A stretch of 64,000 bases of DNA from Auanema rhodensis (taxonomy: Eukaryota > Animalia > Nematoda). Every line of letters starts with the position of its first letter. The first letter of the stretch is position 1. Under the pieces are notes generated by a model. It saw only the letters and a program-made list of their open reading frames with translations. It searched no databases and was not told the origin of the DNA. The stretch spans positions 4,774,001-4,838,000 of the forward strand of contig OZ059896.1 of assembly GCA_964057225.1 (NCBI GenBank), written 5' to 3'. The position numbers were made by a program, and so were the translations under genes. This document shows positions 41,101 to 64,000 of this stretch, one piece after another.

Positions 41101-44100
41101 GCTTCCAAAAACATTTTGACAAAAATTTTTTCGAAAAATTTCAGAATAATTTAGCAAAAAGTAGATGTTTTTAGATTCCTTTTTTCAAGGCAAAAACGAT
41201 GGACAATGTTATTCAACGAAAAAATTATTTCTTCAGGGTGAAAATCGAGGATATAAGTGTAAACTTATATCAGTTGATATCTCGGTGCATTTTTAAGCTA
41301 GCGCAAATCTGATAACACAGATCGACGCAGCTTAAAAATCCGCATCGAATGCACTATACTACATTGAGAAACGCTTAATACAAAAATTAGTTATGATCGT
41401 TTGAAAAATGATGCATTAGTGTATGTTGAGTTTCCATGTACACTCAAAATTGCTTCCAAAAACATTTTGACAAAAATTTTTTCGAAAAATTTCAAAATAA
41501 TTTAGCAAAAAGTAGATGTTTTTAGATTCCTTTTTTCAAGGCAAAAACGATAGACAATGTTATTTAACGAAAAAATTAATTCTTCAGGGTGAAAATCGAG
41601 GATATAGGTGTGAACTTATATCAGTTGATATCTCGGTGCATTTTCAAGCTAGCGCAAATCTGATAGTACAGATCGACGCAGCTTAAAAATCCGCATCGAA
41701 TGCACTATACTACATTGAGAAACGCTTAATACAAAAATTAGTTATGATCGTTTGAAAAATGATGCATTAGTGTATGTTGAGTTTCCATGTACACTCAAAA
41801 TTGCTTCCAAAAACATTTTGACAAAAATTTTTTCGAAAAATTTCAAAATAATTTAGCAAAAAGTAGATGTTTTTAGATTCCTTTTTTCAAGGCAAAAACG
41901 ATAGACAATGTTATTTAACGAAAAAATTAATTCTTCAGGGTGAAAATCGAGGATATAGGTGTGAACTTATATCAGTTGATATCTCGGTGCATTTTCAAGC
42001 TAGCGCAAATCTGATAGTACAGATCGACGCAGCTTAAAAATCCGCATCGAATGCACTATACTACATTGAGAAACGCTAAATACAAAAATTAGTTATGATC
42101 GTTTGAAAAATGATGCATTAGTGTATGTTGAGTTTCCATGTACACTCAAAATTGCTTCCAAAAACATTTTGACAAAAATTTTTTCGAAAAATTTCAAAAT
42201 AATTTAGCAAAAAGTAGATGTTTTTAGATTCCTTTTTTCAAGGCAAAAACGATGGACAATGTTATTCAACGAAAAAATTATTTCTTCAGGGTGAAAATCG
42301 AGGATATAAGTGTGAACTTATATCAGTTGATATCTCGGTGCATTTTTAAGCTAGCGCAAATCTGATAACACAGATCGACGCAGCTTAAAAATCCGCATCG
42401 AATGCACTATATTACATTGAGAAAAGCTAAATACAAATATTAGTTATGATCGTTTGAAAAATGATGCATTAGTGTATGTTGAGTTTCCATGTACACTCAA
42501 AATTGCTTCCAAAAACATTTTGACAAAAATTTTTTCGAAAAATTTCAAAATAATTTAGCAAAAAGTAGATGTTTTTAGATTCCTTTTTTCAAGGCAAAAA
42601 CGATGGACAATGTTATTCAACGAAAAAATTAATTCTTCAGGGTGAAAATCGAGGATATAAGTGTGAACTTATATCAGTTGATATCTCGGTGCATTTTTAA
42701 GCTAGCGCAAATCTGATAACACAGATGGACGCAGCTTAAAAATCCGCATCGAATGCACTATATAACATTGAGAAAAGCTAAATACAAAAATTAGTTATGA
42801 TCGTTTGAAAAATGATGCATTAGTGTATGTTGAGTTTCCATGTACACTCAAAATTGCTTCCAAAAACATTTTGACAAAAATTTTTTCGAAAAATTTCAAA
42901 ATAATTTAGCAAAAAGTAGATGTTTTTAGATTCCTTTTTTCAAGGCAAAAACGATAGACAATGTTATTTAACGAAAAAATTAATTCTTCAGGGTGAAAAT
43001 CGAGGATATAGGTGTGAACTTATATCAGTTGATATCTCGGTGCATTTTCAAGCTAGCGCAAATCTGATAGTACAGATCGACGCAGCTTAAAAATCCGCAT
43101 CGAATGCACTATACTACATTGAGAAACGCTAAATACAAAAATTAGTTATGATCGTTTGAAAAATGATGCATTAGTGTATGTTGAGTTTCCATGTACACTC
43201 AAAATTGCTTCCAAAAACATTTTGACAAAAATTTTTTCAAAAAATTTCAAAATAATTTAGCGAAAAGTAGATGTTTTTAGATTCCTTTTTTCAAGGCAAA
43301 AACGATGGACAATGTTATTCAACGAAAAAATTAATTCTTCAGGGTGAAAATCGAGGATATAGGTGTGAACTTATATCAGTTGATATCTCGGTGCATTTTT
43401 AAGCTAGCGCAAATCTGATAGTACAGATCGACGCAGCTTAAAAATCCGCATCGAATGCACTATACTACATTGAGAAACGCTTAATACAAAAATAAGTTAT
43501 GATCGTTTGAAAAATGATGCATTAGTGTATGTTGAGTTTCCATGTACACTCAAAATTGCTTCCAAAAACATTTTGACAAAAATTTTTTCGAAAAATTTCA
43601 AAATAATTTAGCAAAAAGTAGATGTTTTTAGATTCCTTTTTTCAAGGCAAAAACGATGGACAATGTTATTCAACGAAAAAATTAATTCTTCAGGGTGAAA
43701 ATCGAGGATATAGGTGTGAACTTATATCAGTTGATATCTCGGTGCATTTTCAAGCCAGCGCAAATCTGATAGTACACATCGACGCAGCTTAAAAATCCGC
43801 ATCGAATGCACTATACTACATTGAGAAACGCTTAATACAAAAATAAGTTATGATCGTTTGAAAAATGATGCATTAGTGTATGTTGAGTTTCCATGTACAC
43901 TCAAAATTGCTTCCAAAAACATTTTGACAAAAATTTTTTCGAAAAATTTCAAAATAATTTAGCAAAAAGTAGATGTTTTTAGATTCCTTTTTTCAAGGCA
44001 AAAACGATGGACAATGTTATTCAACGAAAAAATTAATTCTTCAGGGTGAAAATCGAGGATATAGGTGTGAACTTATATCAGTTGATATCTCGGTGCATTT

Positions 44101-45622
44101 TCAAGCCAGCGCAAATCTGATAGTACACATCGACGCAGCTTAAAAATCCGCATCGAATGCACTATACTACATTGAGAAACGCTTAATACAAAAATTAGTT
44201 ATGATCGTTTGAAAAATGATGCATTAGTGTATGTTGAGTTTCCATGTACACTCCAAATTGCTTCCAAAAACATTTTGACAAAAATTTTTTCAAAAAATTT
44301 CAAAATAATTTAGCGAAAAGTAGATGTTTTTAGATTCCTTTTTTCAAGGCAAAAACGATGGACAATGTTATTCAACGAAAAAATTAATTCTTCAGGGTGA
44401 AAATCGAGGATATAGGTGTGAACTTATATCAGTTGATATCTCGGTGCATTTTTAAGCTAGCGCAAATCTGATAGTACAGATCGACGCAGCGTAATAATCC
44501 GCATCGAATGCACTATACTACATTGAGAAACGCTTAATACAAAAATTAGTTATGATCTTTTGAAAAATGATGCATTAGTGTATGTTGAGTTTCCATGTAC
44601 ACTCAAAATTGCTTCCAAAAACATTTTGACAAAAATTTTTTCGAAAAATTTCAAAATAATTTAGCAAAAAGTAGATGTTTTTAGATTCCTTTTTTCAAGG
44701 CAAAAACGATGGACAATGTTATTCAACGAAAAAATTAATTCTTCAGGGTGAAAATCGAGGATATAGGTGTGAACTTATATCAGTTGATATCTCGGTGCAT
44801 TTTCAAGCCAGCGCAAATCTGATAGTACACATCGACGCAGCTTAAAAATCCGCATCGAATGCACTATACTACATTGAGAAACGCTTAATACAAAAATAAG
44901 TTATGATCGTTTGAAAAATGATGCATTAGTGTATGTTGAGTTTCCATGTACACTCCAAATTGCTTCCAAAAACATTTTGACAAAAATTTTTTCAAAAAAT
45001 TTCAAAATAATTTAGCGAAAAGTAGATGTTTTTAGATTCCTTTTTTCAAGGCAAAAACGATGGACAATGTTATTCAACGAAAAAATTAATTCTTCAGGGT
45101 GAAAATCGAGGATATAGGTGTGAACTTATATCAGTTGATATCTCGGTGCATTTTTAAGCTAGCGCAAATCTGATAGTACAGATCGACGCAGCTTAATAAT
45201 CCGCATCGAATGCACTATACTACATTGAGAAACGCTTAATACAAAAATTAGTTATGATCTTTTGAAAAATGATGCATTAGTGTATGTTGAGTTTCCATGT
45301 ACACTCAAAATTGCTTCCAAAAACATTTTGACAAAAATTTTTTCGAAAAATTTCAAAATAATTTAGCAAAAAGTAGATGTTTTTAGATTCCTTTTTTCGA
45401 GGCAAAAACGATGGACAATGTTATTCAACGAAAAAATTAATTCTTCAGGGTGAAAATCGAGGATATAAGTGTGAACTTATATCAGTTGATATCTCGGTGC
45501 ATTTTCGAGCTAGCGCAAATCTGATAGTACAGATCGACGCAGCTTAAAAATCCGCATCGAATGCACTATACTACATTGAGAAACGCTTAATACAAAAATA
45601 AGTTATGATCGTTTGAAAAATG
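23111..45622 (+). repeat. SatA subfamily A2 domain
   Basis: Monomers carry aaggcaaaaacg, ttttcga, tttagc, acaatg, caacga, cagggtg and attgag. The TAG in tttagc explains why the 63-aa ORF disappears after 22990. Confidence 0.92.
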
Positions 45623-48595
45623 CCTTGAAAAAAGGAATCTAAAAACATCTACTTTTTGCTAAATTATTTTGAAATTTTTCGAAAAAATTTTTGTCAAAAT
45701 GTTTTTGGAAGCAATTTTGAGTGTACATGGAAACTCAACATACACTAATGCATCATTTTTCAAACGATCATAACTTATTTTTGTATTAAGCGTTTCTCAA
45801 TGTAGTATAGTGCATTCGATGCGGATTTTTAAGCTGCGTCGATCTGTACTATCAGATTTGCGCTAGCTCGAAAATGCACCGAGATATCAACTGATATAAG
45901 TTCACACTTATATCCTCGATTTTCACCCTGAAGAATTAATTTTTTCGTTGAATAACATTGTCCATCGTTTTTGCCTCGAAAAAAGGAATCTAAAAACATC
46001 TACTTTTTGCTAAATTATTTTGAAATTTTTCGAAAAAATTTTTGTCAAAATGTTTTTGGAAGCAATTTTGAGTGTACATGGAAACTCAACATACACTAAT
46101 GCATCATTTTTCAAAAGATCATAACTAATTTTTGTATTAAGCGTTTCTCAATGTAGTATAGTGCATTCGATGCGGATTATTAAGCTGCGTCGATCTGTAC
46201 TATCAGATTTGCGCTAGCTTAAAAATGCACCGAGATATCAACTGATATAAGTTCACACCTATATCCTCGATTTTCACCCTGAAGAATTAATTTTTTCGTT
46301 GAATAACATTGTCCATCGTTTTTGCCTTGAAAAAAGGAATCTAAAAACATCTACTTTTCGCTAAATTATTTTGAAATTTTTTGAAAAAATTTTTGTCAAA
46401 ATGTTTTTGGAAGCAATTTGGAGTGTACATGGAAACTCAACATACACTAATGCATCATTTTTCAAACGATCATAACTAATTTTTGTATTAAGCGTTTCTC
46501 AATGTAGTATAGTGCATTCGATGCGGATTTTTAAGCTGCGTCGATGTGTACTATCAGATTTGCGCTGGCTTGAAAATGCACCGAGATATCAACTGATATA
46601 AGTTCACACCTATATCCTCGATTTTCACCCTGAAGAATTAATTTTTTCGTTGAATAACATTGTCCATCGTTTTTGCCTTGAAAAAAGGAATCTAAAAACA
46701 TCTACTTTTTGCTAAATTATTTTGAAATTTTTCGAAAAAATTTTTGTCAAAATGTTTTTGGAAGCAATTTTGAGTGTACATGGAAACTCAACATACACTA
46801 ATGCATCATTTTTCAAACGATCATAACTTATTTTTGTATTAAGCGTTTCTCAATGTAGTATAGTGCATTCGATGCGGATTTTTAAGCTGCGTCGATGTGT
46901 ACTATCAGATTTGCGCTGGCTTGAAAATGCACCGAGATATCAACTGATATAAGTTCACACCTATATCCTCGATTTTCACCCTGAAGAATTAATTTTTTCG
47001 TTGAATAACATTGTCCATCGTTTTTGCCTTGAAAAAAGGAATCTAAAAACATCTACTTTTTGCTAAATTATTTTGAAATTTTTCGAAAAAATTTTTGTCA
47101 AAATGTTTTTGGAAGCAATTTTGAGTGTACATGGAAACTCAACATACACTAATGCATCATTTTTCAAAAGATCATAACTAATTTTTGTATTAAGCGTTTC
47201 TCAATGTAGTATAGTGCATTCGATGCGGATTATTAAGCTGCGTCGATCTGTACTATCAGATTTGCGCTAGCTTAAAAATGCACCGAGATATCAACTGATA
47301 TAAGTTCACACCTATATCCTCGATTTTCACCCTGAAGAATTAATTTTTTCGTTGAATAACATTGTCCATCGTTTTTGCCTTGAAAAAAGGAATCTAAAAA
47401 CATCTACTTTTCGCTAAATTATTTTGAAATTTTTTGAAAAAATTTTTGTCAAAATGTTTTTGGAAGCAATTTGGAGTGTACATGGAAACTCAACATACAC
47501 TAATGCATCATTTTTCAAACGATCATAACTAATTTTTGTATTAAGCGTTTCTCAATGTAGTATAGTGCATTCGATGCGGATTTTTAAGCTGCGTCGATGT
47601 GTACTATCAGATTTGCGCTGGCTTGAAAATGCACCGAGATATCAACTGATATAAGTTCACACCTATATCCTCGATTTTCACCCTGAAGAATTAATTTTTT
47701 CGTTGAATAACATTGTCCATCGTTTTTGCCTTGAAAAAAGGAATCTAAAAACATCTACTTTTTGCTAAATTATTTTGAAATTTTTCGAAAAAATTTTTGT
47801 CAAAATGTTTTTGGAAGCAATTTTGAGTGTACATGGAAACTCAACATACACTAATGCATCATTTTTCAAACGATCATAACTTATTTTTGTATTAAGCGTT
47901 TCTCAATGTAGTATAGTGCATTCGATGCGGATTTTTAAGCTGCGTCGATGTGTACTATCAGATTTGCGCTGGCTTGAAAATGCACCGAGATATCAACTGA
48001 TATAAGTTCACACCTATATCCTCGATTTTCACCCTGAAGAATTAATTTTTTCGTTGAATAACATTGTCCATCGTTTTTGCCTTGAAAAAAGGAATCTAAA
48101 AACATCTACTTTTTGCTAAATTATTTTGAAATTTTTCGAAAAAATTTTTGTCAAAATGTTTTTGGAAGCAATTTTGAGTGTACATGGAAACTCAACATAC
48201 ACTAATGCATCATTTTTCAAACGATCATAACTTATTTTTGTATTAAGCGTTTCTCAATGTAGTATAGTGCATTCGATGCGGATTTTTAAGCTGCGTCGAT
48301 CTGTACTATCAGATTTGCGCTAGCTTAAAAATGCACCGAGATATCAACTGATATAAGTTCACACCTATATCCTCGATTTTCACCCTGAAGAATTAATTTT
48401 TTCGTTGAATAACATTGTCCATCGTTTTTGCCTTGAAAAAAGGAATCTAAAAACATCTACTTTTCGCTAAATTATTTTGAAATTTTTTGAAAAAATTTTT
48501 GTCAAAATGTTTTTGGAAGCAATTTTGAGTGTACATGGAAACTCAACATACACTAATGCATCATTTTTCAAACGATCATAACTAATTTTTGTATT
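43132..48595. repeat. Large interrupted palindrome (fold-back duplication) in SatA: arms about 43132-45622 and 45754-48595, 131-bp spacer
   Basis: Rare variants are mirrored. G45399 pairs with C45977 (coordinate sum 91376). After a one-monomer offset, G43262 pairs with C48465 (sum 91727). Confidence 0.9.
45621..45622. other. SatA orientation-switch breakpoint, 2-bp microhomology TG
   Basis: gtttgaaaaa[tg]ccttgaaaaaagg: TG fits both the forward (aaaaatgatg) and inverted (tttttgcctt) registers. Confidence 0.9.
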
Positions 48596-49743
48596 AAGCG
48601 TTTCTCAATGTAGTATAGTGCATTCGATGCGGATTTTTAAGCTGCGTCGATCTGTACTATCAGATTTGCGCTAGCTTGAAAATGCACCGAGATATCAACT
48701 GATATAAGTTCACACTTATATCCTCGATTTTCACCCTGAAGAATTAATTTTTTCGTTGAATAACATTGTCCATCGTTTTTGCCTTGAAAAAAGGAATCTA
48801 AAAACATCTACTTTTTGCTAAATTATTTTGAAATTTTTCGAAAAAATTTTTGTCAAAATGTTTTTGGAAGCAATTTTGAGTGTACATGGAAACTCAACAT
48901 ACACTAATGCATCATTTTTCAAACGATCATAACTTATTTTTGTATTAAGCGTTTCTCAATGTAGTATAGTGCATTCGATGCGGATTTTTAAGCTGCGTCG
49001 ATCTGTACTATCAGATTTGCGCTAGCTCGAAAATGCACCGAGATATCAACTGATATAAGTTCACACTTATATCCTCGATTTTCACCCTGAAGAATTAATT
49101 TTTTCGTTGAATAACATTGTCCATCGTTTTTGCCTTGAAAAAAGGAATCTAAAAACATCTACTTTTCGCTAAATTATTTTGAAATTTTTTGAAAAAATTT
49201 TTGTCAAAATGTTTTTGGAAGCAATTTTGAGTGTACATGGAAACTCAACATACACTAATGCATCATTTTTCAAACGATCATAACTAATTTTTGTATTAAG
49301 CGTTTCTCAATGTAGTATAGTGCATTCGATGCGGATTTTTAAGCTGCGTCGATCTGTACTATCAGATTTGCGCTAGCTTGAAAATGCACCGAGATATCAA
49401 CTGATATAAGTTCACACTTATATCCTCGATTTTCACCCTGAAGAATTAATTTTTTCGTTGAATAACATTGTCCATCGTTTTTGCCTTGAAAAAAGGAATC
49501 TAAAAACATCTACTTTTCGCTAAATTATTTTGAAATTTTTTGAAAAAATTTTTGTCAAAATGTTTTTGGAAGCAATTTTGAGTGTACATGGAAACTCAAC
49601 ATACACTAATGCATCATTTTTCAAACGATCATAACTAATTTTTGTATTAAGCGTTTCTCAATGTAGTATAGTGCATTCGATGCGGATTTTTAAGCTGCGT
49701 CGATCTGTACTATCAGATTTGCGCTAGCTTGAAAATGCACCGA

Positions 49744-49745
49744 GA
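49744..49745. other. SatA/SatB junction, 2-bp microhomology GA, no intervening sequence
   Basis: aaatgcaccga[ga]aaaccgcatctc: SatA would continue tatc, and SatB is normally preceded by tttt or ttat. Confidence 0.92.
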
Positions 49746-51105
49746 AAACCGCATCTCTTTATCTTTCACGTGAAGCGAGTTACATACCAAGTGCACATCA
49801 CGTGTACATTTAATTAGCATAAATTAAAGTTCACGTAAATTTCAAAGTCATGGTTACCATGCACCAATATCAATAAAATTTTGTTTTTAGACTAATATGG
49901 ACATGGGGAATCTAATTTTGAAAACCGCATCTCTTTATTCTTCACGTGAAGCGAGTTACATACCAAGTGCACATCACGTGTACATTTAATTAGCATAAAT
50001 TAAAGTTCACGTAAATTTCAAAGTCATGGTTACCATGCACCAATATCAATGAAATTTTGTTTTTAGACTAATATGGACATGGGGAATCTAATTTTGAAAA
50101 CCGCATCTCTTTATCTTTCACGTGAAGCGAGTTACATACCAAGTGCACATCACGTGTACATTTAACTAGCATAAATTAAAGTTCACGTAAACTTCAAACT
50201 CATGGTTACCATACACCAATATCAATAAAAATTTGTTTTTAGAGTAATATGGACATGGAGAATCTATTTTTAAAAACCGCATCTCTTTATCTTTCACGTG
50301 AATCGAGTTACATACCAAGTGCACATCACGTGTACATTTAATTAGCATAAATTAAAGTTCACGTAAATTTCAAACTCATGGTTACCATGCACCAATATCA
50401 ATAAAAATTTGTTTTTAGACTAATATGGACATGGAGAATCTAATTTTGAAAACCGCATCTCTTTATCTTTCACGTGAAGCGAGTTACATACCAAGTGCAC
50501 ATCACGTGTACATTTAATTAGCATAAATTAAAGTTCACGTAAATTTCAAACTCATGGTTACCATGCACCAATATCAATACAATTTTGTTTTTAGACTAAT
50601 ATGGACATGGGGAATCTAATTTTGAAAACCGCATCTCTTTATCTTTCACGTGCGAGTTACATACCAAGTGCACATCACGTGTACATTTAATTAGCATAAA
50701 TTAAAGTTCACTTAAATTTCAAAGTCATGGTTACCATGCACCAATATCAATAAAAATTTGTTTTTAGACTAATATGGACATGGGGAATCTAATTTTCAAA
50801 ACCGCATCTCTTTATCTTTCACGTGAAGCGAGTTACATACCAAGTGCACATCACGTGTACATTTAATTAGCATAAATTAAAGTTCACTTAAATTTGAAAG
50901 TCATGGTTACCATGCAGCAATATCAATAAAATTTTGTTTTTAGACTAATATGGACATGGGGAATCTAATTTTGAAAACCGCATCTCTTTATCTTTCACGT
51001 GAAGCGAGTTACATACCAAGTGCACATCCCGTGTACATTTAATTAGCATAAATTAAAGTTCACGTAAATTTCAAACTCATGGTTACCATGCACCAATATC
51101 AATAA

Positions 51106-51111
51106 AAATTT
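51106..51111. other. SatB orientation-switch breakpoint, 6-bp self-complementary microhomology AAATTT
   Basis: caatatcaataa[aaattt]acgtgaac: AAATTT fits both registers, and another AAATTT lies at 51066-51071. Confidence 0.92.
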
Positions 51112-54100
51112 ACGTGAACTTTAATTTATGCTAATTAAATGTACACGGGATGTGCACTTGGTATGTAACTCGCTTCACGTGAAAGATAAAGAGATGCGGT
51201 TTTCAAAATTAGATTCCCCATGTCCATATTAGTCTAAAAACAAAATTTTATTGATATTGCTGCATGGTAACCATGACTTTCAAATTTAAGTGAACTTTAA
51301 TTTATGCTAATTAAATGTACACGTGATGTGCACTTGGTATGTAACTCGCTTCACGTGAAAGATAAAGAGATGCGGTTTTGAAAATTAGATTCCCCATGTC
51401 CATATTAGTCTAAAAACAAATTTTTATTGATATTGGTGCATGGTAACCATGACTTTGAAATTTAAGTGAACTTTAATTTATGCTAATTAAATGTACACGT
51501 GATGTGCACTTGGTATGTAACTCGCACGTGAAAGATAAAGAGATGCGGTTTTCAAAATTAGATTCCCCATGTCCATATTAGTCTAAAAACAAAATTGTAT
51601 TGATATTGGTGCATGGTAACCATGAGTTTGAAATTTACGTGAACTTTAATTTATGCTAATTAAATGTACACGTGATGTGCACTTGGTATGTAACTCGCTT
51701 CACGTGAAAGATAAAGAGATGCGGTTTTCAAAATTAGATTCTCCATGTCCATATTAGTCTAAAAACAAATTTTTATTGATATTGGTGCATGGTAACCATG
51801 AGTTTGAAATTTACGTGAACTTTAATTTATGCTAATTAAATGTACACGTGATGTGCACTTGGTATGTAACTCGATTCACGTGAAAGATAAAGAGATGCGG
51901 TTTTTAAAAATAGATTCTCCATGTCCATATTACTCTAAAAACAAATTTTTATTGATATTGGTGTATGGTAACCATGAGTTTGAAGTTTACGTGAACTTTA
52001 ATTTATGCTAATTAAATGTACACGTGATGTGCACTTGGTATGTAACTCGCTTCACGTGAAAGATAAAGAGATGCGGTTTTCAAAATTAGATTCCCCATGT
52101 CCATATTAGTCTAAAAACAAAATTTCATTGATATTGGTGCATGGTAACCATGACTTTGAAATTTACGTGAACTTTAATTTATGCTAATTAAATGTACACG
52201 TGATGTGCACTTGGTATGTAACTCGCTTCACGTGAAGAATAAAGAGATGCGGTTTTCAAAATTAGATTCCCCATGTCCATATTAGTCTAAAAACAAAATT
52301 TTATTGATATTGGTGCATGGTAACCATGACTTTGAAATTTACGTGAACTTTAATTTATGCTAATTAAATGTACACGTGATGTGCACTTGGTATGTAACTC
52401 GCTTCACGTGAAAGATAAAGAGATGCGGTTTTCATAATTAGATTCTCCATGTCCATATTAGTCTAAAAACAAATTTTTATTGATATTGGTTCATGGTAAC
52501 CATGAGTTTGAAATTTACGTGAACTTTAATTTATGCTAATTAAATGTACACGTGATGTGCACTTGGTATGTAACTCGCTTCACGTGAAAGATAAAGAGAT
52601 GCGGTTTTCAAAATTAGATTCCCCATGTCCATATTAGTCTAAAAACAAAATTTTATTGATATTGGTGCATGGTAACCATGACTTTGAAATTTACGTGAAC
52701 TTTAATTTATGCTAATTAAATGTACACGTGATGTGCACTTGGTATGTAACTCGCTTCACGTGAAAGATAAAGAGATGCGTTTTTCAAAATTAGATTCCCC
52801 ATGTCCATATTAGTCTAAAAACAAATTTTTATTGATATTGGTGCATGGTAACCATGAGTTTGAAATTTATGTGAACTTTAATTTATGCTAATTAAATGTA
52901 CACGTGATGTGCACTTGGTATGTAACTCGCTTCACGTGAAAGATAAAGAGATGCGGTTTTCAAAATTAGATTCCCCATGTCCATATTAGTCTAAAAACAA
53001 AATTTTATTGATATTGATGCATGGTAACCATGACTTTGAAATTTAAGTGAACTTTAATTTATGCTAATTAAATGTACACGTGATGTGCACTTGGTATGTA
53101 ACTCGCTTCACGTGAAAGATAAAGAGATGCGGTTTTCAAAATTAGATTCCCCATGTCCATATTAGTCTAAAAACAAATTTTTATTGATATTGGTTCATGG
53201 TAACCATGAGTTTGAAATTTACGTGAACTTTAATTTATGCTAATTAAATGTACACGTGATGTGCACTTGGTATGTAACTCGCTTCACGTGAAAGATAAAG
53301 AGATGCGGTTTTCAAAATTAGATTCCCCATGTCCATATTAGTCTAAAAACAAAATTTTATTGATATTGGTGCATGGTAACCATGACTTTGAAATTTACGT
53401 GAACTTTAATTTATGCTAATTAAATGTACACGTGATGTGCACTTGGTATGTAACTCGCTTCACGTGAAAGATAAAGAGATGCGGTTTTTAAAATTAGATT
53501 CTCCATGTCCATATTAGTCTAAAAACAAATTTTTATTGATATTGGTATATGGTAACCATGAGTTTGAAATTTACGTGAACTTTAATTTATGCTAATTAAA
53601 TGTACACGTGATGTGCACTTGGTATGTAACTCGCTTCACGTGAAAAATAAAGAGATGCGGTTTTCAAAATTAGATTCCCCATGTCCATATTAGTCTAAAA
53701 ACAAAATTTTATTGATATTGGTGCATGGTAACCATGACTTTGAAATTTACGTGAACTTTAATTTATGCTAATTAAATGTACACGTGATGTGCACTTGGTA
53801 TGTAACTCGCTTCACGTGAAAGATAAAGAGATGCGGTTTTCATAATTAGATTCCCCATGTCCATATTAGTCTAAAAACAAAATTTTATTGATATTGGTGC
53901 ATGGTAACCATGACTTTGAAATTTACGTGAACTTTGATTTATGCTAATTAAATGTACACGTGATGTGCACTTGGTATGTAACTCGCTTCACGTGAAAGAT
54001 AAAGAGATGCGTTTTTCAAATATAGATTCCCCATGTCCATATTAGTCTAAAAACAAATTTTTATTGATATTGGTGCATGGTAACCATGAGTTTGAAATTT

Positions 54101-57100
54101 ACGTGAACTTTAATTTATGCTAATTAAATGTACACGGGATGTGCACTTGGTATGTAACTCGCTTCACGTGAAAGATAAAGAGATGCGGTTTTCAAAATTA
54201 GATTCCCCATGTCCATATTAGTCTAAAAACAAAATTTTATTGATATTGCTGCATGGTAACCATGACTTTCAAATTTAAGTGAACTTTAATTTATGCTAAT
54301 TAAATGTACACGTGATGTGCACTTGGTATGTAACTCGCTTCACGTGGAAGATAAAGAGATGCGGTTTTGAAAATTAGATTCCCCATGTCCATATTAGTCT
54401 AAAAACAAATTTTTATTGATATTGGTGCATGGTAACCATGACTTTGAAATTTACGTGAACTTTAATTTATGCTAATTAAATGTACACGGGATGTGCACTT
54501 GGTATGTAACTCGCTTCACGTGAAAGATAAAGAGATGCGGTTTTCAAAATTAGATTCCCCATGTCCATATTAGTCTAAAAACAAAATTTTATTGATATTG
54601 GTGCATGGTAACCATGAGTTTGAAATTTACGTGAACTTTAATTTATGCTAATTAAATGTACACGTGATGTGCACTTGGTATGTAACTCGCTTCACGTGAA
54701 AGATAAAGAGATGCGGTTTTTAAAAATAGATTCTCCATGTCCATATTACTCTAAAAACAAATTTTTATTGATATTGGTGCATGGTAACCATGAGTTTGAA
54801 ATTTACGTGAACTTTAATTTATGCTAATTAAATGTACACGTGATGTGCACTTGGTATGTAACTCGCTTCACGTGAAAGATAAAGAGATGCGGTTTTCAAA
54901 ATTAGATTCTCCATGTCCATATTAGTCTAAAAACAAATTTTTATTGATATTGGTGCATGGTAACCATGAGTTTGAAATTTACGTGAACTTTAATTTATGC
55001 TAATTAAATGTACACGTGATGTGCACTTGGTATGTAACTCGCTTCACGTGAAAGATAAAGAGATGCGGTTTTGAAAATTAGATTCCCCATGTCCATATTA
55101 GTCTAAAAACAAAATTTTATTGATATTGGTGCATGGTAACCATGACTTTGAAATTTACGTGAACTTTAATTTATGCTAATTAAATGTACACGTGATGTGC
55201 ACTTGGTATGTAACTCGCTTCACGTGAAAGATAAAGAGATGCGTTTTTCAAATATAGATTCCCCATGTCCATATTAGTCTAAAAACAAATTTTTATTGAT
55301 ATTGCTGCATGGTAACCATGACTTTCAAATTTAAGTGAACTTTAATGTATGCTAATTAAATGTACACGTGATGTGCACTTGGTATGTAACTCGCTTCACG
55401 TGAAAGATAAAGAGATGCGGTTTTGAAAATTAGATTCCCCATGTCCATATTAGTCTAAAAACAAATTTTTATTGATATTGGTGCATGGTAACCATGACTT
55501 TGAAATTTACGTGAACTTTAATTTATGCTAATAAAATGTACACGTGATGTGCACTTGGTATGTAACTCGCTTCACGTGAAAGATAAAGAGATGCGGTTTT
55601 TAAAAATAGATTCTCCATGTCCATATTACTCTAAAAACAAATTTTTATTGATATTGGTGCATGGTAACCATGAGTTTGAAATTTACGTGAACTTTAATTT
55701 ATGCTAATTAAATGTACACGTGATGTGCACTTGGTATGTAACTCGCTTCACGTGAAAGATAAAGAGATGCGGTTTTCAAAATTAGATTCTCCATGTCCAT
55801 ATTAGTCTAAAAACAAATTTTTATTGATATTGGTGCATGGTAACCATGAGTTTGAAATTTACGTGAACTTTAATTTATGCTAATTAAATGTACACGTGAT
55901 GTGCACTTGGTATGTAACTCGCTTCACGTGAAAGATAAAGAGATGCGGTTTTCAAAATTAGATTCCCCATGTCCATATTAGTCTAAAAACAAAATTTTAT
56001 TGATATTGGTGCATGGTAACCATGACTTTGAAATTTACGTGAACTTTAATTTATGCTAATTAAATGTACACGTGATGTGCACTTGGTATGTAACTCGCTT
56101 CACGTGAAAGATAAAGAGATGCGGTTTTTAAAATTAGATTCTCCATGTCCATATTAGTCTAAAAACAAATTTTTATTGATATTGGTGTATGGTAACCATG
56201 AGTTTGAAATTTACGTGAACTTTAATTTATGCTAATTAAATGTACACGTGATGTGCACTTGGTATGTAACTCGCTTCACGTGAAAAATAAAGAGATGCGG
56301 TTTTCAAAATTAGATTCCCCATGTCCATATTAGTCTAAAAACAAAATTTTATTGATATTGGTGCATGGTAACCATGACTTTGAAATTTACGTGAACTTTA
56401 ATTTATGCTAATTAAATGTACACGTGATGTGCACTTGGTATGTAACTCGCTTCACGTGAAAGATAAAGAGATGCGGTTTTCATAATTAGATTCCCCATGT
56501 CCATATTAGTCTAAAAACAAAATTTTATTGATATTGGTGCATGGTAACCATGACTTTGAAATTTACGTGAACTTTGATTTATGCTAATTAAATGTACACG
56601 TGATGTGCACTTGGTATGTAACTCGCTTCACGTGAAAGATAAAGAGATGCGTTTTTCAAATATAGATTCCCCATGTCCATATTAGTCTAAAAACAAATTT
56701 TTATTGATATTGGTGCATGGTAACCATGAGTTTGAAATTTACGTGAACTTTAATTTATGCTAATTAAATGTACACGGGATGTGCACTTGGTATGTAACTC
56801 GCTTCACGTGAAAGATAAAGAGATGCGGTTTTCAAAATTAGATTCCCCATGTCCATATTAGTCTAAAAACAAAATTTTATTGATATTGCTGCATGGTAAC
56901 CATGACTTTCAAATTTAAGTGAACTTTAATTTATGCTAATTAAATGTACACGTGATGTGCACTTGGTATGTAACTCGCTTCACGTGAAAGATAAAGAGAT
57001 GCGGTTTTGAAAATTAGATTCCCCATGTCCATATTAGTCTAAAAACAAATTTTTATTGATATTGGTGCATGGTAACCATGACTTTGAAATTTAAGTGAAC

Positions 57101-60100
57101 TTTAATTTATGCTAATTAAATGTACACGTGATGTGCACTTGGTATGTAACTCGCACGTGAAAGATAAAGAGATGCGGTTTTCAAAATTAGATTCCCCATG
57201 TCCATATTAGTCTAAAAACAAAATTGTATTGATATTGGTGCATGGTAACCATGAGTTTGAAATTTACGTGAACTTTAATTTATGCTAATTAAATGTACAC
57301 GTGATGTGCACTTGGTATGTAACTCGCTTCACGTGAAAGATAAAGAGATGCGGTTTTCAAAATTAGATTCTCCATGTCCATATTAGTCTAAAAACAAATT
57401 TTTATTGATATTGGTGCATGGTAACCATGAGTTTGAAATTTACGTGAACTTTAATTTATGCTAATTAAATGTACACGTGATGTGCACTTGGTATGTAACT
57501 CGATTCACGTGAAAGATAAAGAGATGCGGTTTTTAAAAATAGATTCTCCATGTCCATATTACTCTAAAAACAAATTTTTATTGATATTGGTGTATGGTAA
57601 CCATGAGTTTGAAGTTTACGTGAACTTTAATTTATGCTAATTAAATGTACACGTGATGTGCACTTGGTATGTAACTCGCTTCACGTGAAAGATAAAGAGA
57701 TGCGGTTTTCAAAATTAGATTCCCCATGTCCATATTAGTCTAAAAACAAAATTTCATTGATATTGGTGCATGGTAACCATGACTTTGAAATTTACGTGAA
57801 CTTTAATTTATGCTAATTAAATGTACACGTGATGTGCACTTGGTATGTAACTCGCTTCACGTGAAAAATAAAGAGATGCGGTTTTCAAAATTAGATTCCC
57901 CATGTCCATATTAGTCTAAAAACAAAATTTTATTGATATTGGTGCATGGTAACCATGACTTTGAAATTTACGTGAACTTTAATTTATGCTAATTAAATGT
58001 ACACGTGATGTGCACTTGGTATGTAACTCGCTTCACGTGAAAGATAAAGAGATGCGGTTTTCATAATTAGATTCTCCATGTCCATATTAGTCTAAAAACA
58101 AATTTTTATTGATATTGGTTCATGGTAACCATGAGTTTGAAATTTACGTGAACTTTAATTTATGCTAATTAAATGTACACGTGATGTGCACTTGGTATGT
58201 AACTCGCTTCACGTGAAAGATAAAGAGATGCGGTTTTCAAAATTAGATTCCCCATGTCCATATTAGTCTAAAAACAAAATTTTATTGATATTGGTGCATG
58301 GTAACCATGACTTTGAAATTTACGTGAACTTTAATTTATGCTAATTAAATGTACACGTGATGTGCACTTGGTATGTAACTCGCTTCACGTGAAAGATAAA
58401 GAGATGCGGTTTTTAAAATTAGATTCTCCATGTCCATATTAGTCTAAAAACAAATTTTTATTGATATTGGTGTATGGTAACCATGAGTTTGAAATTTACG
58501 TGAACTTTAATTTATGCTAATTAAATGTACACGTGATGTGCACTTGGTATGTAACTCGCTTCACGTGAAAAATAAAGAGATGCGGTTTTCAAAATTAGAT
58601 TCCCCATGTCCATATTAGTCTAAAAACAAAATTTTATTGATATTGGTGCATGGTAACCATGACTTTGAAATTTACGTGAACTTTAATTTATGCTAATTAA
58701 ATGTACACGTGATGTGCACTTGGTATGTAACTCGCTTCACGTGAAAGATAAAGAGATGCGGTTTTCATAATTAGATTCCCCATGTCCATATTAGTCTAAA
58801 AACAAAATTTTATTGATATTGGTGCATGGTAACCATGACTTTGAAATTTACGTGAACTTTGATTTATGCTAATTAAATGTACACGTGATGTGCACTTGGT
58901 ATGTAACTCGCTTCACGTGAAAGATAAAGAGATGCGTTTTTCAAATATAGATTCCCCATGTCCATATTAGTCTAAAAACAAATTTTTATTGATATTGGTG
59001 CATGGTAACCATGAGTTTGAAATTTACGTGAACTTTAATTTATGCTAATTAAATGTACACGGGATGTGCACTTGGTATGTAACTCGCTTCACGTGAAAGA
59101 TAAAGAGATGCGGTTTTCAAAATTAGATTCCCCATGTCCATATTAGTCTAAAAACAAAATTTTATTGATATTGCTGCATGGTAACCATGACTTTCAAATT
59201 TAAGTGAACTTTAATTTATGCTAATTAAATGTACACGTGATGTGCACTTGGTATGTAACTCGCTTCACGTGAAAGATAAAGAGATGCGGTTTTGAAAATT
59301 AGATTCCCCATGTCCATATTAGTCTAAAAACAAATTTTTATTGATATTGGTGCATGGTAACCATGACTTTGAAATTTAAGTGAACTTTAATTTATGCTAA
59401 TTAAATGTACACGTGATGTGCACTTGGTATGTAACTCGCACGTGAAAGATAAAGAGATGCGGTTTTCAAAATTAGATTCCCCATGTCCATATTAGTCTAA
59501 AAACAAAATTGTATTGATATTGGTGCATGGTAACCATGAGTTTGAAATTTACGTGAACTTTAATTTATGCTAATTAAATGTACACGTGATGTGCACTTGG
59601 TATGTAACTCGCTTCACGTGAAAGATAAAGAGATGCGGTTTTCAAAATTAGATTCTCCATGTCCATATTAGTCTAAAAACAAATTTTTATTGATATTGGT
59701 GCATGGTAACCATGAGTTTGAAATTTACGTGAACTTTAATTTATGCTAATTAAATGTACACGTGATGTGCACTTGGTATGTAACTCGATTCACGTGAAAG
59801 ATAAAGAGATGCGGTTTTTAAAAATAGATTCTCCATGTCCATATTACTCTAAAAACAAATTTTTATTGATATTGGTGTATGGTAACCATGAGTTTGAAGT
59901 TTACGTGAACTTTAATTTATGCTAATTAAATGTACACGTGATGTGCACTTGGTATGTAACTCGCTTCACGTGAAAGATAAAGAGATGCGGTTTTCAAAAT
60001 TAGATTCCCCATGTCCATATTAGTCTAAAAACAAAATTTCATTGATATTGGTGCATGGTAACCATGACTTTGAAATTTACGTGAACTTTAATTTATGCTA

Positions 60101-63100
60101 ATTAAATGTACACGTGATGTGCACTTGGTATGTAACTCGCTTCACGTGAAAAATAAAGAGATGCGGTTTTCAAAATTAGATTCCCCATGTCCATATTAGT
60201 CTAAAAACAAAATTTTATTGATATTGGTGCATGGTAACCATGACTTTGAAATTTACGTGAACTTTAATTTATGCTAATTAAATGTACACGTGATGTGCAC
60301 TTGGTATGTAACTCGCTTCACGTGAAAGATAAAGAGATGCGGTTTTCATAATTAGATTCTCCATGTCCATATTAGTCTAAAAACAAATTTTTATTGATAT
60401 TGGTTCATGGTAACCATGAGTTTGAAATTTACGTGAACTTTAATTTATGCTAATTAAATGTACACGTGATGTGCACTTGGTATGTAACTCGCTTCACGTG
60501 AAAGATAAAGAGATGCGGTTTTCAAAATTAGATTCCCCATGTCCATATTAGTCTAAAAACAAAATTTTATTGATATTGGTGCATGGTAACCATGACTTTG
60601 AAATTTACGTGAACTTTAATTTATGCTAATTAAATGTACACGTGATGTGCACTTGGTATGTAACTCGCTTCACGTGAAAGATAAAGAGATGCGTTTTTCA
60701 AAATTAGATTCCCCATGTCCATATTAGTCTAAAAACAAATTTTTATTGATATTGGTGCATGGTAACCATGAGTTTGAAATTTATGTGAACTTTAATTTAT
60801 GCTAATTAAATGTACACGTGATGTGCACTTGGTATGTAACTCGCTTCACGTGAAAGATAAAGAGATGCGGTTTTCAAAATTAGATTCCCCATGTCCATAT
60901 TAGTCTAAAAACAAAATTTTATTGATATTGATGCATGGTAACCATGACTTTGAAATTTAAGTGAACTTTAATTTATGCTAATTAAATGTACACGTGATGT
61001 GCACTTGGTATGTAACTCGCTTCACGTGAAAGATAAAGAGATGCGGTTTTCAAAATTAGATTCCCCATGTCCATATTAGTCTAAAAACAAATTTTTATTG
61101 ATATTGGTGCATGGTAACCATGAGTTTGAAATTTACGTGAACTTTAATTTATGCTAATTAAATGTACACGGGATGTGCACTTGGTATGTAACTCGCTTCA
61201 CGTGAAAGATAAAGAGATGCGGTTTTCAAAATTAGATTCCCCATGTCCATATTAGTCTAAAAACAAAATTTTATTGATATTGGTGCATGGTAACCATGAG
61301 TTTGAAATTTACGTGAACTTTAATTTATGCTAATTAAATGTACACGTGATGTGCACTTGGTATGTAACTCGCTTCACGTGAAAGATAAAGAGATGCGGTT
61401 TTTAAAAATAGATTCTCCATGTCCATATTACTCTAAAAACAAATTTTTATTGATATTGGTGCATGGTAACCATGAGTTTGAAATTTACGTGAACTTTAAT
61501 TTATGCTAATTAAATGTACACGTGATGTGCACTTGGTATGTAACTCGCTTCACGTGAAAGATAAAGAGATGCGGTTTTCAAAATTAGATTCTCCATGTCC
61601 ATATTAGTCTAAAAACAAATTTTTATTGATATTGGTGCATGGTAACCATGAGTTTGAAATTTACGTGAACTTTAATTTATGCTAATTAAATGTACACGTG
61701 ATGTGCACTTGGTATGTAACTCGCTTCACGTGAAAGATAAAGAGATGCGGTTTTCAAAATTAGATTCCCCATGTCCATATTAGTCTAAAAACAAAATTTT
61801 ATTGATATTGGTGCATGGTAACCATGACTTTGAAATTTACGTGAACTTTAATTTATGCTAATTAAATGTACACGTGATGTGCACTTGGTATGTAACTCGC
61901 TTCACGTGAAAGATAAAGAGATGCGTTTTTCAAATATAGATTCCCCATGTCCATATTAGTCTAAAAACAAATTTTTATTGATATTGCTGCATGGTAACCA
62001 TGACTTTCAAATTTAAGTGAACTTTAATGTATGCTAATTAAATGTACACGTGATGTGCACTTGGTATGTAACTCGCTTCACGTGAAAGATAAAGAGATGC
62101 GGTTTTGAAAATTAGATTCCCCATGTCCATATTAGTCTAAAAACAACATTTTATTGATATTGGTGCATGGTAACCATGACTTTGAAATTTACGTGAACTT
62201 TAATTTAAGCTAATTAAATGTACACGTGATGTGCACTTGGTATGTAACTCGCTTCACGTGAAAGATAAAGAGATGCGGTTTTTAAAAATAGATTCTCCAT
62301 GTCCATATTACTCTAAAAACAAATTTTTATTGATATTGGTGCATGGTAACCATGAGTTTGAAATTTACGTGAACTTTAATTTATGCTAATTAAATGTACA
62401 CGTGATGTGCACTTGGTATGTAACTCGCTTCACGTGAAAGATAAAGAGATGCGGTTTTCAAAATTAGATTCTCCATGTCCATATTAGTCTAAAAACAAAT
62501 TTTTATTGATATTGGTGCATGGTAACCATGAGTTTGAAATTTACGTGAACTTTAATTTATGCTAATTAAATGTACACGTGATGTGCACTTGGTATGTAAC
62601 TCGCTTCACGTGAAAGATAAAGAGATGCGGTTTTCAAAATTAGATTCCCCATGTCCATATTAGTCTAAAAACAAAATTTTATTGATATTGGTGCATGGTA
62701 ACCATGACTTTGAAATTTACGTGAACTTTAATTTATGCTAATTAAATGTACACGTGATGTGCACTTGGTATGTAACTCGCTTCACGTGAAAGATAAAGAG
62801 ATGCGGTTTTTAAAATTAGATTCTCCATGTCCATATTAGTCTAAAAACAAATTTTTATTGATATTGGTGTATGGTAACCATGAGTTTGAAATTTACGTGA
62901 ACTTTAATTTATGCTAATTAAATGTACACGTGATGTGCACTTGGTATGTAACTCGCTTCACGTGAAAAATAAAGAGATGCGGTTTTCAAAATTAGATTCC
63001 CCATGTCCATATTAGTCTAAAAACAAAATTTTATTGATATTGGTGCATGGTAACCATGACTTTGAAATTTACGTGAACTTTAATTTATGCTAATTAAATG

Positions 63101-64000
63101 TACACGTGATGTGCACTTGGTATGTAACTCGCTTCACGTGAAAGATAAAGAGATGCGGTTTTCATAATTAGATTCCCCATGTCCATATTAGTCTAAAAAC
63201 AAAATTTTATTGATATTGGTGCATGGTAACCATGACTTTGAAATTTACGTGAACTTTGATTTATGCTAATTAAATGTACACGTGATGTGCACTTGGTATG
63301 TAACTCGCTTCACGTGAAAGATAAAGAGATGCGTTTTTCAAATATAGATTCCCCATGTCCATATTAGTCTAAAAACAAATTTTTATTGATATTGGTGCAT
63401 GGTAACCATGAGTTTGAAATTTACGTGAACTTTAATTTATGCTAATTAAATGTACACGGGATGTGCACTTGGTATGTAACTCGCTTCACGTGAAAGATAA
63501 AGAGATGCGGTTTTCAAAATTAGATTCCCCATGTCCATATTAGTCTAAAAACAAAATTTTATTGATATTGCTGCATGGTAACCATGACTTTCAAATTTAA
63601 GTGAACTTTAATTTATGCTAATTAAATGTACACGTGATGTGCACTTGGTATGTAACTCGCTTCACGTGAAAGATAAAGAGATGCGGTTTTGAAAATTAGA
63701 TTCCCCATGTCCATATTAGTCTAAAAACAAATTTTTATTGATATTGGTGCATGGTAACCATGACTTTGAAATTTAAGTGAACTTTAATTTATGCTAATTA
63801 AATGTACACGTGATGTGCACTTGGTATGTAACTCGCACGTGAAAGATAAAGAGATGCGGTTTTCAAAATTAGATTCCCCATGTCCATATTAGTCTAAAAA
63901 CAAAATTGTATTGATATTGGTGCATGGTAACCATGAGTTTGAAATTTACGTGAACTTTAATTTATGCTAATTAAATGTACACGTGATGTGCACTTGGTAT
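51106..64000 (+). repeat. SatB 176-bp tandem satellite array, about 73 monomers, open at the window end
   Basis: Monomer atgctaattaaatgtacacgtgatgtgcacttgg...tttacgtgaactttaattt. ORF spacing 54645 to 55525 is 880 = 5 x 176. Occasional 173-bp monomers lack ctt. Confidence 0.99.

Follow-up and report, generated by a model that had tools for sequence, protein, structure and literature searches.

Fold-backs are a known scar of broken chromosome ends that copied backwards, and at the locus described here they stand on both sides of a single join between two satellite arrays. At fusion sites in telomerase mutants of C. elegans, inverted fragments of high identity lie at the fused ends. Their lengths range from 333 to 7110 bp, with most at 2-7 kb, and they were interpreted as the product of sister fusion followed by breakage and a further fusion; one of them starts 802 bp past the forward breakpoint (PMC8034613). 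Human fold-back inverted duplications with a disomic spacer consist of an inverted copy adjacent to its source across a single-copy spacer (766 bp to 70 kb, median 3.4 kb). Where spacer and inversion meet they show inverted microhomology of 2-8 bp, their far end is joined to other DNA, and the duplications span megabases and come with terminal deletions (PMC3907307). In the macro-dyads of Tribolium beetles, two satellite families are intermingled in megabase blocks with hairpin-capable, multi-kilobase inverted sub-arrays. The inversion points and transition zones there are conserved sequences that recur thousands of times, the subunits at the turn are degenerate, and the minor satellite is a cassette within the major satellite (PMC13081366, PMC12581902). 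A 2026 Tribolium paper describes macro-dyad symmetries as documented in Tribolium only.

The stretch of DNA analysed here (hereafter the window) comprises 64 kb from Auanema rhodense and was resolved by TRF into four blocks of two satellites. SatA, with a 351-bp monomer, runs forward from 1 to 45622 and inverted, on the minus strand, over about 4.1 kb (45621-49745). SatB, with a 176-bp monomer, runs inverted over about 1.36 kb (49744-51111) and then forward (51106-64000). The same order, A forward, A inverted, B inverted, B forward, had been proposed in a first-pass annotation, and the TRF coordinates agree with it nearly to the base. Within the window the left flank, 45.6 kb long, consists entirely of A, and the right flank, 12.9 kb long, entirely of B. 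By consensus BLAST, the forward SatA array contains about 130 monomers of 351 bp each, with two exceptions, a single 350-bp monomer and the first monomer, which is cut, and it is divided into a subfamily A1 up to about 22807 and a subfamily A2 from 23159. Adjacent forward SatA monomers differ by 7-9 mismatches per 351 bp, about 8 being typical, and this value serves as the background.

SatB is the AT-1 repeat of A. rhodense: the 28-nt AT-1 FISH probe published in the genome preprint has 73 exact matches in SatB in the window. According to the preprint, AT repeats form multi-megabase blocks that are eliminated from the soma and lie at both ends of all six autosomes, and somatic cells lose about 61% of genome DNA. 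Since SatB bears the AT-1 probe, the window lies within an autosomal terminal repeat block that is eliminated from the soma. In the accessible text of the preprint, no mention of the strand structure of satellite arrays was found. A centric (Robertsonian-type) fusion, which was suggested in the first-pass annotation, needs two centromeric arrays at a localised centromere. That suggestion is not borne out, as SatB is the AT-1 of terminal eliminated blocks on all autosomes and most nematodes studied are holocentric (PMC9071541).

The four blocks meet at three joins. J1 (45621-45622) leads from forward A at phase 351/1 to inverted A at phase 134 with a 2-bp overlap, TG. J2 (49744-49745) leads from inverted A at phase 222 to inverted B with a 2-bp overlap, GA, and J3 (51106-51111) leads from inverted B to forward B with a 6-bp overlap, AAATTT. 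Inserted bases are present at none of them, and the microhomology of 2-6 bp that had been claimed was thus found at all three. AAATTT is a palindromic hexamer of which each B monomer carries two copies, 34 bp apart. Calculated over all phase pairs, an overlap of at least 2 bp is expected by chance in about 20% of cases and one of at least 6 bp in about 0.65%. J3 (P about 0.0065) is accordingly the only join that is significant taken singly, and the overlaps of J1 (P about 0.21) and J2 are of a length that chance yields about 20% of the time. At the joins the monomers end in clean truncations and show no degeneracy. J2 is the sole A/B join in the window, and the 14-mers and 31-mers of J1, J2 and J3 each occur once in it. 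A window search for the A/B junction 14-mer and 31-mer found neither near 41982 nor at 52433, and because these k-mers are single, the A/B join is without a repeat at about 41982 or 52433.

Two simpler rearrangements were considered for this layout. A simple inversion over the A/B border would place inverted B before inverted A and would duplicate nothing; in the observed order both turns are duplications. Inverted triplications of the DUP-TRP/INV-DUP and ODIRA type share with the locus a forward, inverted, forward order and short inverted repeats at the turns, but they require the contiguous central block to be present forward on both flanks, with the A/B join repeated at about 41982 and 52433; the J2 k-mers are single, and the flanks are pure A and pure B. 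Both the simple inversion and the plain inverted triplication are excluded because of the block order and the single A/B join, as had been argued beforehand.

The SatA palindrome comprises a forward arm of 2.49 kb (43132-45622), delimited by exact mirrored runs and monomer types, and an inverted arm of 2.84 kb (45754-48595), delimited by a register scan and monomer types. Between them lies a single-copy loop of 131 bp (45623-45753) that is in phase with the inverted arm and corresponds to positions 1-134 of the SatA consensus on the minus strand, with 100% identity by BLAST. In the register scan, inverted 45754-46817 differed from forward 44559-45622 by one mismatch and inverted 46772-48595 from forward 43132-44955 by one mismatch, and the remaining registers gave 46-97 mismatches per 4.1 kb. 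The arms are set apart by one substitution and one whole monomer. The forward arm carries the monomer types T76 T77 T78 T79 T77 T80 T81, and the inverted arm carries, in mirror order, T81 T80 T78 T77 T80 T78 T77 T76, in which the extra monomer is the T78 at 46457-46807. Both changes sit in the forward arm: its T79 bears a private 274G, and it has lost one T78 monomer. The region was computed to fold as a hairpin with a 131-bp loop (z = -26.9). Each family had been described as folding back on itself within 1.4-4.1 kb of the single junction; of the 4.1 kb of inverted A, 2.84 kb mirrors the flank. The remaining 1.15 kb, 48596-49744, which consists of the minus-strand monomers T82, T83 and T84 and a 130-bp partial monomer, has no mirrored or exact partner anywhere in the window. 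Its T82-T84 region differs from the mirrored positions by 4, 12 and 10 mismatches per monomer and from its best matches in the window by 2-3 bases per monomer, and it shares the local subfamily markers of the arms (257G, 258T and 314C). Because this segment is unmirrored, at least one extra event has to be assumed.

In the SatB palindrome, an inverted arm of 7.5 monomers (49745-51071) faces a forward arm (51106-52432) across a single-copy loop of 34 bp (51072-51105) that is in phase with inverted B. Both loops are thus in phase with the inverted arms, which upholds the earlier statement that both spacers belong to the central 5.5-kb segment. Over 1327 aligned bp the arms show one mismatch, at 50166/52011, and seven distinct monomer signatures follow in mirror order across them. 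The region was computed to fold as a hairpin with a 34-bp loop (z = -19.4). The inverted arm ends exactly at J2, the forward array carries on in phase beyond 52432, and the monomer types of the forward arm are found again further right in the forward array (n = 2-8). It follows that inverted B copies the flank and that J2 is a new join.

Taken as a whole, the joins are built like fold-back inverted duplications, with inverted copies beside their sources, single-copy loops, microhomology and no insertions. C. elegans fusion sites offer a direct precedent from experiment, in that a holocentric rhabditid there carries a 0.3-7 kb inverted copy of its own end between that end and its partner (PMC8034613); here 4.1 kb (2.84 kb of it mirrored) and 1.36 kb of inverted DNA meet at J2. 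The loop is part of the inverted piece both here and in the 802-bp example (PMC8034613). The C. elegans cases, however, are laboratory telomerase mutants in which a one-sided fragment of unique subtelomeric DNA lies at a two-chromosome fusion (PMC8034613), whereas the A. rhodense locus comes from an inbred line with no known repair or telomere defect and has fragments on both sides, in satellites of eliminated DNA. Compared with the human fold-backs, the single-copy spacers are far smaller at 34 and 131 bp, the copies measure 1.4-4.1 kb, and two events stand face to face. The multi-kilobase inverted sub-arrays of intermingled satellites resemble those of Tribolium, but here each join occurs once in 64 kb and shows a clean truncation, and the arms reproduce variants that are private to their local flanks.

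In the reading we prefer, to which we assign a probability of roughly one half, the paired structure is a genuine and fairly recent repair scar in a germline-restricted autosomal block: one break at the A/B transition, after which both ends gained short inverted copies of themselves and the resulting stubs were joined by 2-bp microhomology. A chromosome break or collapsed replication fork at or near the transition from forward SatA to forward SatB would have left two ends, one of which gained about 4.1 kb of inverted A and the other about 1.36 kb of inverted B. Short inverted microhomologies may have primed the copying: on the A side TG, which closes a loop of 131 nt, and on the B side the AAATTT pair, which closes one of 34 nt. 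Both ends would have undergone fold-back or sister-chromatid fusion, the fused products would have been replicated, and each fused sister pair would then have broken within a few kilobases of its own axis, as might be expected if chromosomes are pulled along their whole length. The two inverted stubs would finally have been joined at J2. Later unequal exchange in the arrays may have dropped one monomer from the forward A arm, and further exchange probably deleted the forward partner of inverted A 48596-49744. That both loops share the phase of the inverted copies means that the template extended 131 and 34 bp past the retained flank ends, and this fits either a sister chromatid or a replicated hairpin of which the other arm was kept. 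The arms are about 45 times closer to each other than neighbouring monomers are (2 substitutions in 3818 aligned bp against about 8 in 351), and the divergences of the A arms (1/2491) and the B arms (1/1327) are compatible with a similar age and one event. J3 also counts for this route, since the 6-bp inverted repeat used there is significant and forms part of each B monomer. As to its cost, the route takes three breaks and three joins across two cell cycles. Also against it, both loops lie on the short arm, for which the prior is about 1/4 if breakage is random.

One-step replicative repair is the main rival, though distinctly less probable. A single 3' end undergoing serial template switching like that of MMBIR/FoSTeS would have copied forward A to 45622, moved to the opposite strand 131 nt ahead and run back about 4.1 kb, then jumped to the opposite B strand for 1.36 kb, turned at AAATTT and continued as forward B. 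Neither a dicentric-like intermediate nor a second break is required for such a path, and the three clustered microhomology joins, 2-6 bp long and free of insertions inside 5.5 kb, speak for it, as does the shortness of the kilobase-scale copied tracts. An error-prone, template-hopping polymerase in a tandem array would also account for the additional monomer and for the switch of template, in register, at 48595/48596. Promiscuous DNA synthesis commonly adds subtelomeric DNA to uncapped ends in C. elegans fusions (PMC9071541), and organelle genomes provide documented U-turn inversions at inverted repeats separated by less than 50 bp, a spacing also seen at J3 (PMC4417113). Those U-turns, which were defined from organelle reads, mostly land upstream, behind the 3' end (PMC4417113), whereas both switches here would land downstream, ahead of it, and would begin kilobase tracts. 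Hairpin formation or sister fusion with later breakage and rejoining would yield the same final structure as template switching, and the sequence does not separate the two. The earlier proposal that broken, hairpin-processed arrays had been joined is backed by the fold-back anatomy and the C. elegans precedent (PMC8034613) as far as the fold-backs go, and its hairpin step is not distinguishable from template switching by sequence.

The remaining explanations are weaker. It is improbable that the 5.5-kb central block is a real B-to-A border from elsewhere, mis-stitched into place through fold-back chimeras and false satellite overlaps, although satellites are the hardest sequence to assemble and, among the Logan contigs listed from four public runs for 45400-51300, which are unitigs of 60-90 bp, none crosses J1, J2 or J3. 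Such an artefact would require two independent fold-back chimeras 5.5 kb apart, and virtually no fold-back reads occurred in three PacBio samples, one of them HiFi gDNA (PMC12870357). The assembly was made from PacBio HiFi reads with hifiasm, and the preprint gives a coverage of about 29x for the repeat blocks, where reads map for the most part uniquely. As judged from the assembly, the locus also departs from the profile of long-read fold-back artefacts, which are molecule-symmetric, have identical arms to the read ends and come mainly from Nanopore: its arms are finite (2.5 and 1.3 kb) and differ by a monomer and substitutions, its loops are in-phase satellite rather than adapter, and its central block contains 1.15 kb unmatched elsewhere in the window. 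That same 1.15 kb, unmirrored and in the local subfamily of the arms, looks like an older resident and would suit an older inverted block kept identical by arm-to-arm gene conversion; but arm identity is continuous rather than patchy, extending through 2.5-2.8 kb of A and 1.33 kb of B, and past the A arm it drops abruptly to background (4, 12 and 10 mismatches per monomer) without any gradual fading of the mirror signal. Two chance fold-backs near the border fare no better, as two independent events within 5.5 kb would be an unlikely coincidence and the B arm fills the inverted B block exactly to J2, tying the B fold-back to the A/B join; we hold either version of an older or fortuitous origin to be quite unlikely. 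Very improbable, lastly, is a cassette of A, inverted A, inverted B and B that arose once and spread through the terminal blocks of many chromosomes. In its favour, AT repeats are common to both ends of all six autosomes (preprint), and the intermingled major and minor satellites of Tribolium have conserved inversion points and transitions (PMC13081366, PMC12581902). Against it, the junction k-mers are single in 64 kb, the join monomers are truncated cleanly, and the arms reproduce their immediate local flanks, private variants included.

On the reading of one break and two rejoined stubs, the locus offers a base-level anatomy of the joining of two satellite arrays in a genome that sheds about 61% of its DNA somatically. 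If the joins are real, near-perfect kilobase palindromes with loops of 34 and 131 nt persist in an animal germline, with an age of about 10^4 to 10^5 generations when a borrowed mutation rate is used, and they would bear on the replication and tolerance of such palindromic DNA. Paired and single fold-backs might even be a routine mode of break, turn and rejoining in the germline-only satellite blocks of A. rhodense, a suggestion that we put forward tentatively. If so, these blocks would have the hairpin-capable macro-dyad organisation so far documented only in Tribolium beetles, and, lying in DNA that every somatic cell discards, would be unusually tolerant of long short-loop palindromes. Recurrence of the pattern at other borders would extend macro-dyad satellites beyond Tribolium and would tie the turnover of satellites in eliminated DNA to one particular route of break repair, testable in a tractable nematode. 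The scar itself is probably without function. Two kilobase-scale, near-perfect, short-loop palindromes remain at the site, able to fold as hairpins or cruciforms.

The window is filled by two satellites, a 351-bp repeat (SatA) and a 176-bp repeat (SatB), which Tandem Repeats Finder divided into four blocks: SatA on the forward strand (1-45622), inverted SatA, or A' (45621-49745, minus strand), inverted SatB, or B' (49744-51111, minus strand), and SatB on the forward strand (51106-64000). The AT skew changes sign near 45.6 kb and the GC skew near 51.1 kb. Repeat blocks and skew flips agree, and the order A, A', B', B reported in the first-pass annotation is therefore real, with its coordinates right to within one base. 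The junctions are single in the window: the 14-mers given in that annotation and 31-mers centred on the joins each occur exactly once. A preprint on the genome of Auanema rhodense gives a 28-nt FISH probe for its AT-1 repeat (bioRxiv 10.64898/2026.08.27.747507), and SatB contains 73 exact matches to this probe within the window, each on the strand that the block orientation predicts. According to the same source, AT-1 and a second repeat form blocks of several megabases at either end of each of the six autosomes, and these terminal blocks are restricted to the germline and eliminated from somatic cells. SatA probably corresponds to the second of these repeats. Among sampled 31-mers of 45400-51300, 20-67% were also present in runs under four other coded organism labels, which places the satellites, or the strain, under more than one label or in closely related organisms.

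The SatA arms on either side of the A/A' join (J1) were compared by a register-by-register scan and by assigning each monomer to a type according to how it departs from the consensus. The forward side, read up to the turn, gave the types T49 T76 T77 T78 T79 T77 T80 T81, and the inverted side, read from the turn, gave T81 T80 T78 T77 T80 T78 T77 T76 T82 T83 T84; the types lie in mirror order across J1. T79 is T80 with one private change (274G), and T78 differs from T77 at a single site (330). In the scan, A' 45754-46817 matched forward 44559-45622 with one mismatch, as did A' 46772-48595 against forward 43132-44955. The arms measure 2.49 kb on the forward side and 2.84 kb on the inverted side, and they are set apart by a single true substitution and by one entire monomer. 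The inverted arm contains a clean three-monomer higher-order repeat at 46106-48211, (T80 T78 T77) twice, and the forward arm carries both changes, having lost one T78 and gained the private 274G. Adjacent forward SatA monomers differ at 7-9 bases per 351, and the A' block placed in any other register shows 46-97 mismatches per 4.1 kb; the mirroring of the arms is far beyond chance. The proposal that the entire 4.1-kb A' block folds back on its flank was borne out for 2.84 kb but failed for the 1.15 kb adjoining the A'/B' join (48596-49744, types T82-T84), for which no mirrored or exact partner was found anywhere in the 64-kb window. The best matches to this stretch in the window differ by 2-3 bases per monomer, and the monomers that stand opposite it in the mirror differ by 4, 12, and 10. 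Three markers of the local subfamily, 257G, 258T, and 314C, are common to this stretch and both SatA arms.

The SatB palindrome is simpler. Across 1327 bp, B' 49745-51071 and the mirrored forward SatB 51106-52432 differ at a single position (50166/52011), and the change is on the inverted side, at 50166. Seven monomers with distinct signatures, one of them a 173-bp deletion variant, follow in mirror order. B' stops exactly at the A'/B' join (J2), the only SatA/SatB join in the window, while forward SatB runs on in phase beyond 52432, and the arm's monomer types are met again in the forward array; this makes B' the copy and J2 a new join. The reading of J2 as an old border between the two satellites was rejected on the same observations.

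No bases are inserted at any of the three joins. The flanking sequences overlap by TG at J1 (45621-45622), by GA at J2 (49744-49745), and by AAATTT at the B'/B join (J3, 51106-51111). When every phase pair of the consensus monomers was enumerated, an overlap of at least 2 bp was expected by chance in about 20% of cases and one of at least 6 bp in about 0.65%, and only J3 is significant on its own. The hexamer AAATTT is palindromic, and all SatB monomers carry two copies of it at a spacing of 34 bp; the repeat thus comes with its own fold-back site. Each palindrome encloses a single-copy loop (45623-45753, 131 bp, in SatA; 51072-51105, 34 bp, in SatB), and single-strand folding predicted perfect stems around both (z = -26.9 and -19.4, respectively). 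Had each flank snapped back on its own 3' tail with no second template, the loops would be in phase with the flanks; they are in phase with A' and B' instead, which excludes this reading. The template thus extended 131 and 34 bp past the retained flank ends, implying a sister chromatid, the opposite strand of a fork, or a replicated hairpin whose other arm was kept.

Two chimeric molecules 5.5 kb apart would be required for the structure to be an artefact of assembly or library preparation, an explanation that we consider very unlikely. The A. rhodense assembly was made from PacBio HiFi reads of the inbred line APS4 with hifiasm 0.16.1, and repeat-rich regions have about 29x coverage, with most reads there mapping uniquely, according to the preprint (bioRxiv 10.64898/2026.08.27.747507). 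In a survey that covered three PacBio samples, of which one was HiFi genomic DNA, fold-back reads were virtually absent, and Nanopore genomic DNA showed about 0.6% (PMC12870357). Artefactual palindromes have identical arms that reach the ends of the molecule, whereas the arms here are finite and are distinguished by substitutions and one monomer, and 1.15 kb of the central block is absent elsewhere in the window. When public reads of four runs, taken from three studies, were overlaid on 45400-51300, nothing but unitigs of 60-90 bp was obtained, and among those listed none bridges a join. The evidence, which is indirect, favours a real structure.

Two further rearrangements are incompatible with the anatomy of the locus. 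A simple inversion across a SatA/SatB border would place B' before A'. An inverted triplication, including one formed by ODIRA, needs a central block that is one contiguous ancestral segment present also on both flanks, and the SatA/SatB join should then recur near 41982 and 52433; it is absent at both. The reading we favour, with a probability of about 0.5, is a cycle of break, fusion, breakage, and rejoining. A single break at or near a transition from forward SatA to forward SatB would have left two ends that folded back or fused with their sisters; after replication each fused pair would have broken within a few kilobases of its axis, and the two resulting ends, each with an inverted stub, would have been joined at the 2-bp microhomology. 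The annotation's picture of two broken, hairpin-processed satellite arrays joined together is a fair description of this course, and analogy with C. elegans fusion sites lends it support. The course has direct precedent in the fusion fragments of this holocentric rhabditid: in telomerase-mutant survivors, additional fragments, 333-7110 bp long and for the most part 2-7 kb, were found at 8 of 20 fused ends, in four cases out of five the fragment was an inverted copy of its own end, and one begins 802 bp beyond the forward breakpoint (PMC8034613). The authors of that study read the fragments as products of sister fusion, breakage, and then fusion (PMC8034613).

Serial template switching, in which one 3' end changes template three times, each time primed by microhomology, to give the order A, A', B', B, would yield an identical final sequence, and the two routes are not separable by sequence alone. 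A review views such fragments as copied on by promiscuous DNA synthesis (PMC9071541), and U-turn inversions are known at closely spaced inverted repeats; documented U-turns, however, mostly land behind the 3' end (PMC4417113), whereas both switches here land ahead of it, and we regard this route as unlikely. Under either the break-and-fusion cycle or template switching, both the absence of one monomer and the 1.15 kb that lacks a mirrored partner call for later unequal exchange or in-register template hopping, and one exchange near 43131/43132 would suffice. The suggestion of a centric fusion was not upheld: the SatB repeat lies in terminal eliminated blocks of all autosomes, according to the preprint, and most nematodes studied are holocentric (PMC9071541).

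The locus is of the same kind as fold-back inverted duplications that show a spacer and microhomology (PMC3907307) and as the stubs at nematode fusion sites (PMC8034613). What is new is the instance, which is two-sided, lies at the join of two satellite families in germline-only DNA, and comes from an inbred line in which no repair defect is known. In form it resembles the macro-dyad symmetries of intermingled satellites in Tribolium, stated as known only in that genus (PMC13081366, PMC12581902); the inversion points there are conserved, repeated, and degenerate, whereas the locus lacks such points, at least within 64 kb. That fold-backs are a routine mode of remodelling in these terminal blocks is possible but rather doubtful.

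The arms differ by two substitutions in 3818 aligned bp (d of about 5e-4). At a C. elegans-like mutation rate of about 2-3e-9 per site per generation, which is borrowed and not A. rhodense's own, the age would be roughly 1e5 generations, with a Poisson range of about 1e4 to 5e5. Should the differences be consensus errors, this estimate would be too high; should there be conversion between the arms, it would be too low. Divergence is compatible between SatA (1/2491) and SatB (1/1327), which fits a single event, with little power. In yeast, Mre11 opens hairpins and restrains palindrome formation. The preprint lists an MRE-11 paralogue with the few germline-restricted genes of A. rhodense (bioRxiv 10.64898/2026.08.27.747507); it might bear on the tolerance of these palindromes.

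SatA is extremely regular: among about 140 monomers, every uncut one is 351 bp long except for a single 350-bp monomer (108del) at 31934. The only other length variant combines an inserted A at 91 with a deletion at 96, for a net 351 bp, and recurs at 1, 1748, 7715, 8768, 9470, 11927, and 15788. The forward SatA array switches subfamily, in phase, at 22808-23159, with about 16 fixed differences between left and right and a hybrid monomer at 22808; a change of sign in the GC skew near 23 kb corresponds to this switch. Each 176-bp SatB unit (for example 52361-52536) contains two CACGTG palindromes in addition to its two AAATTT hexamers. A 173-bp form of the SatB monomer, which lacks 3 bp near position 43, occurs at 50521-50693 (minus strand), 51484-51656, and 62035-62207; its copies are irregularly spaced in the forward array, and one belongs to the mirrored arm.
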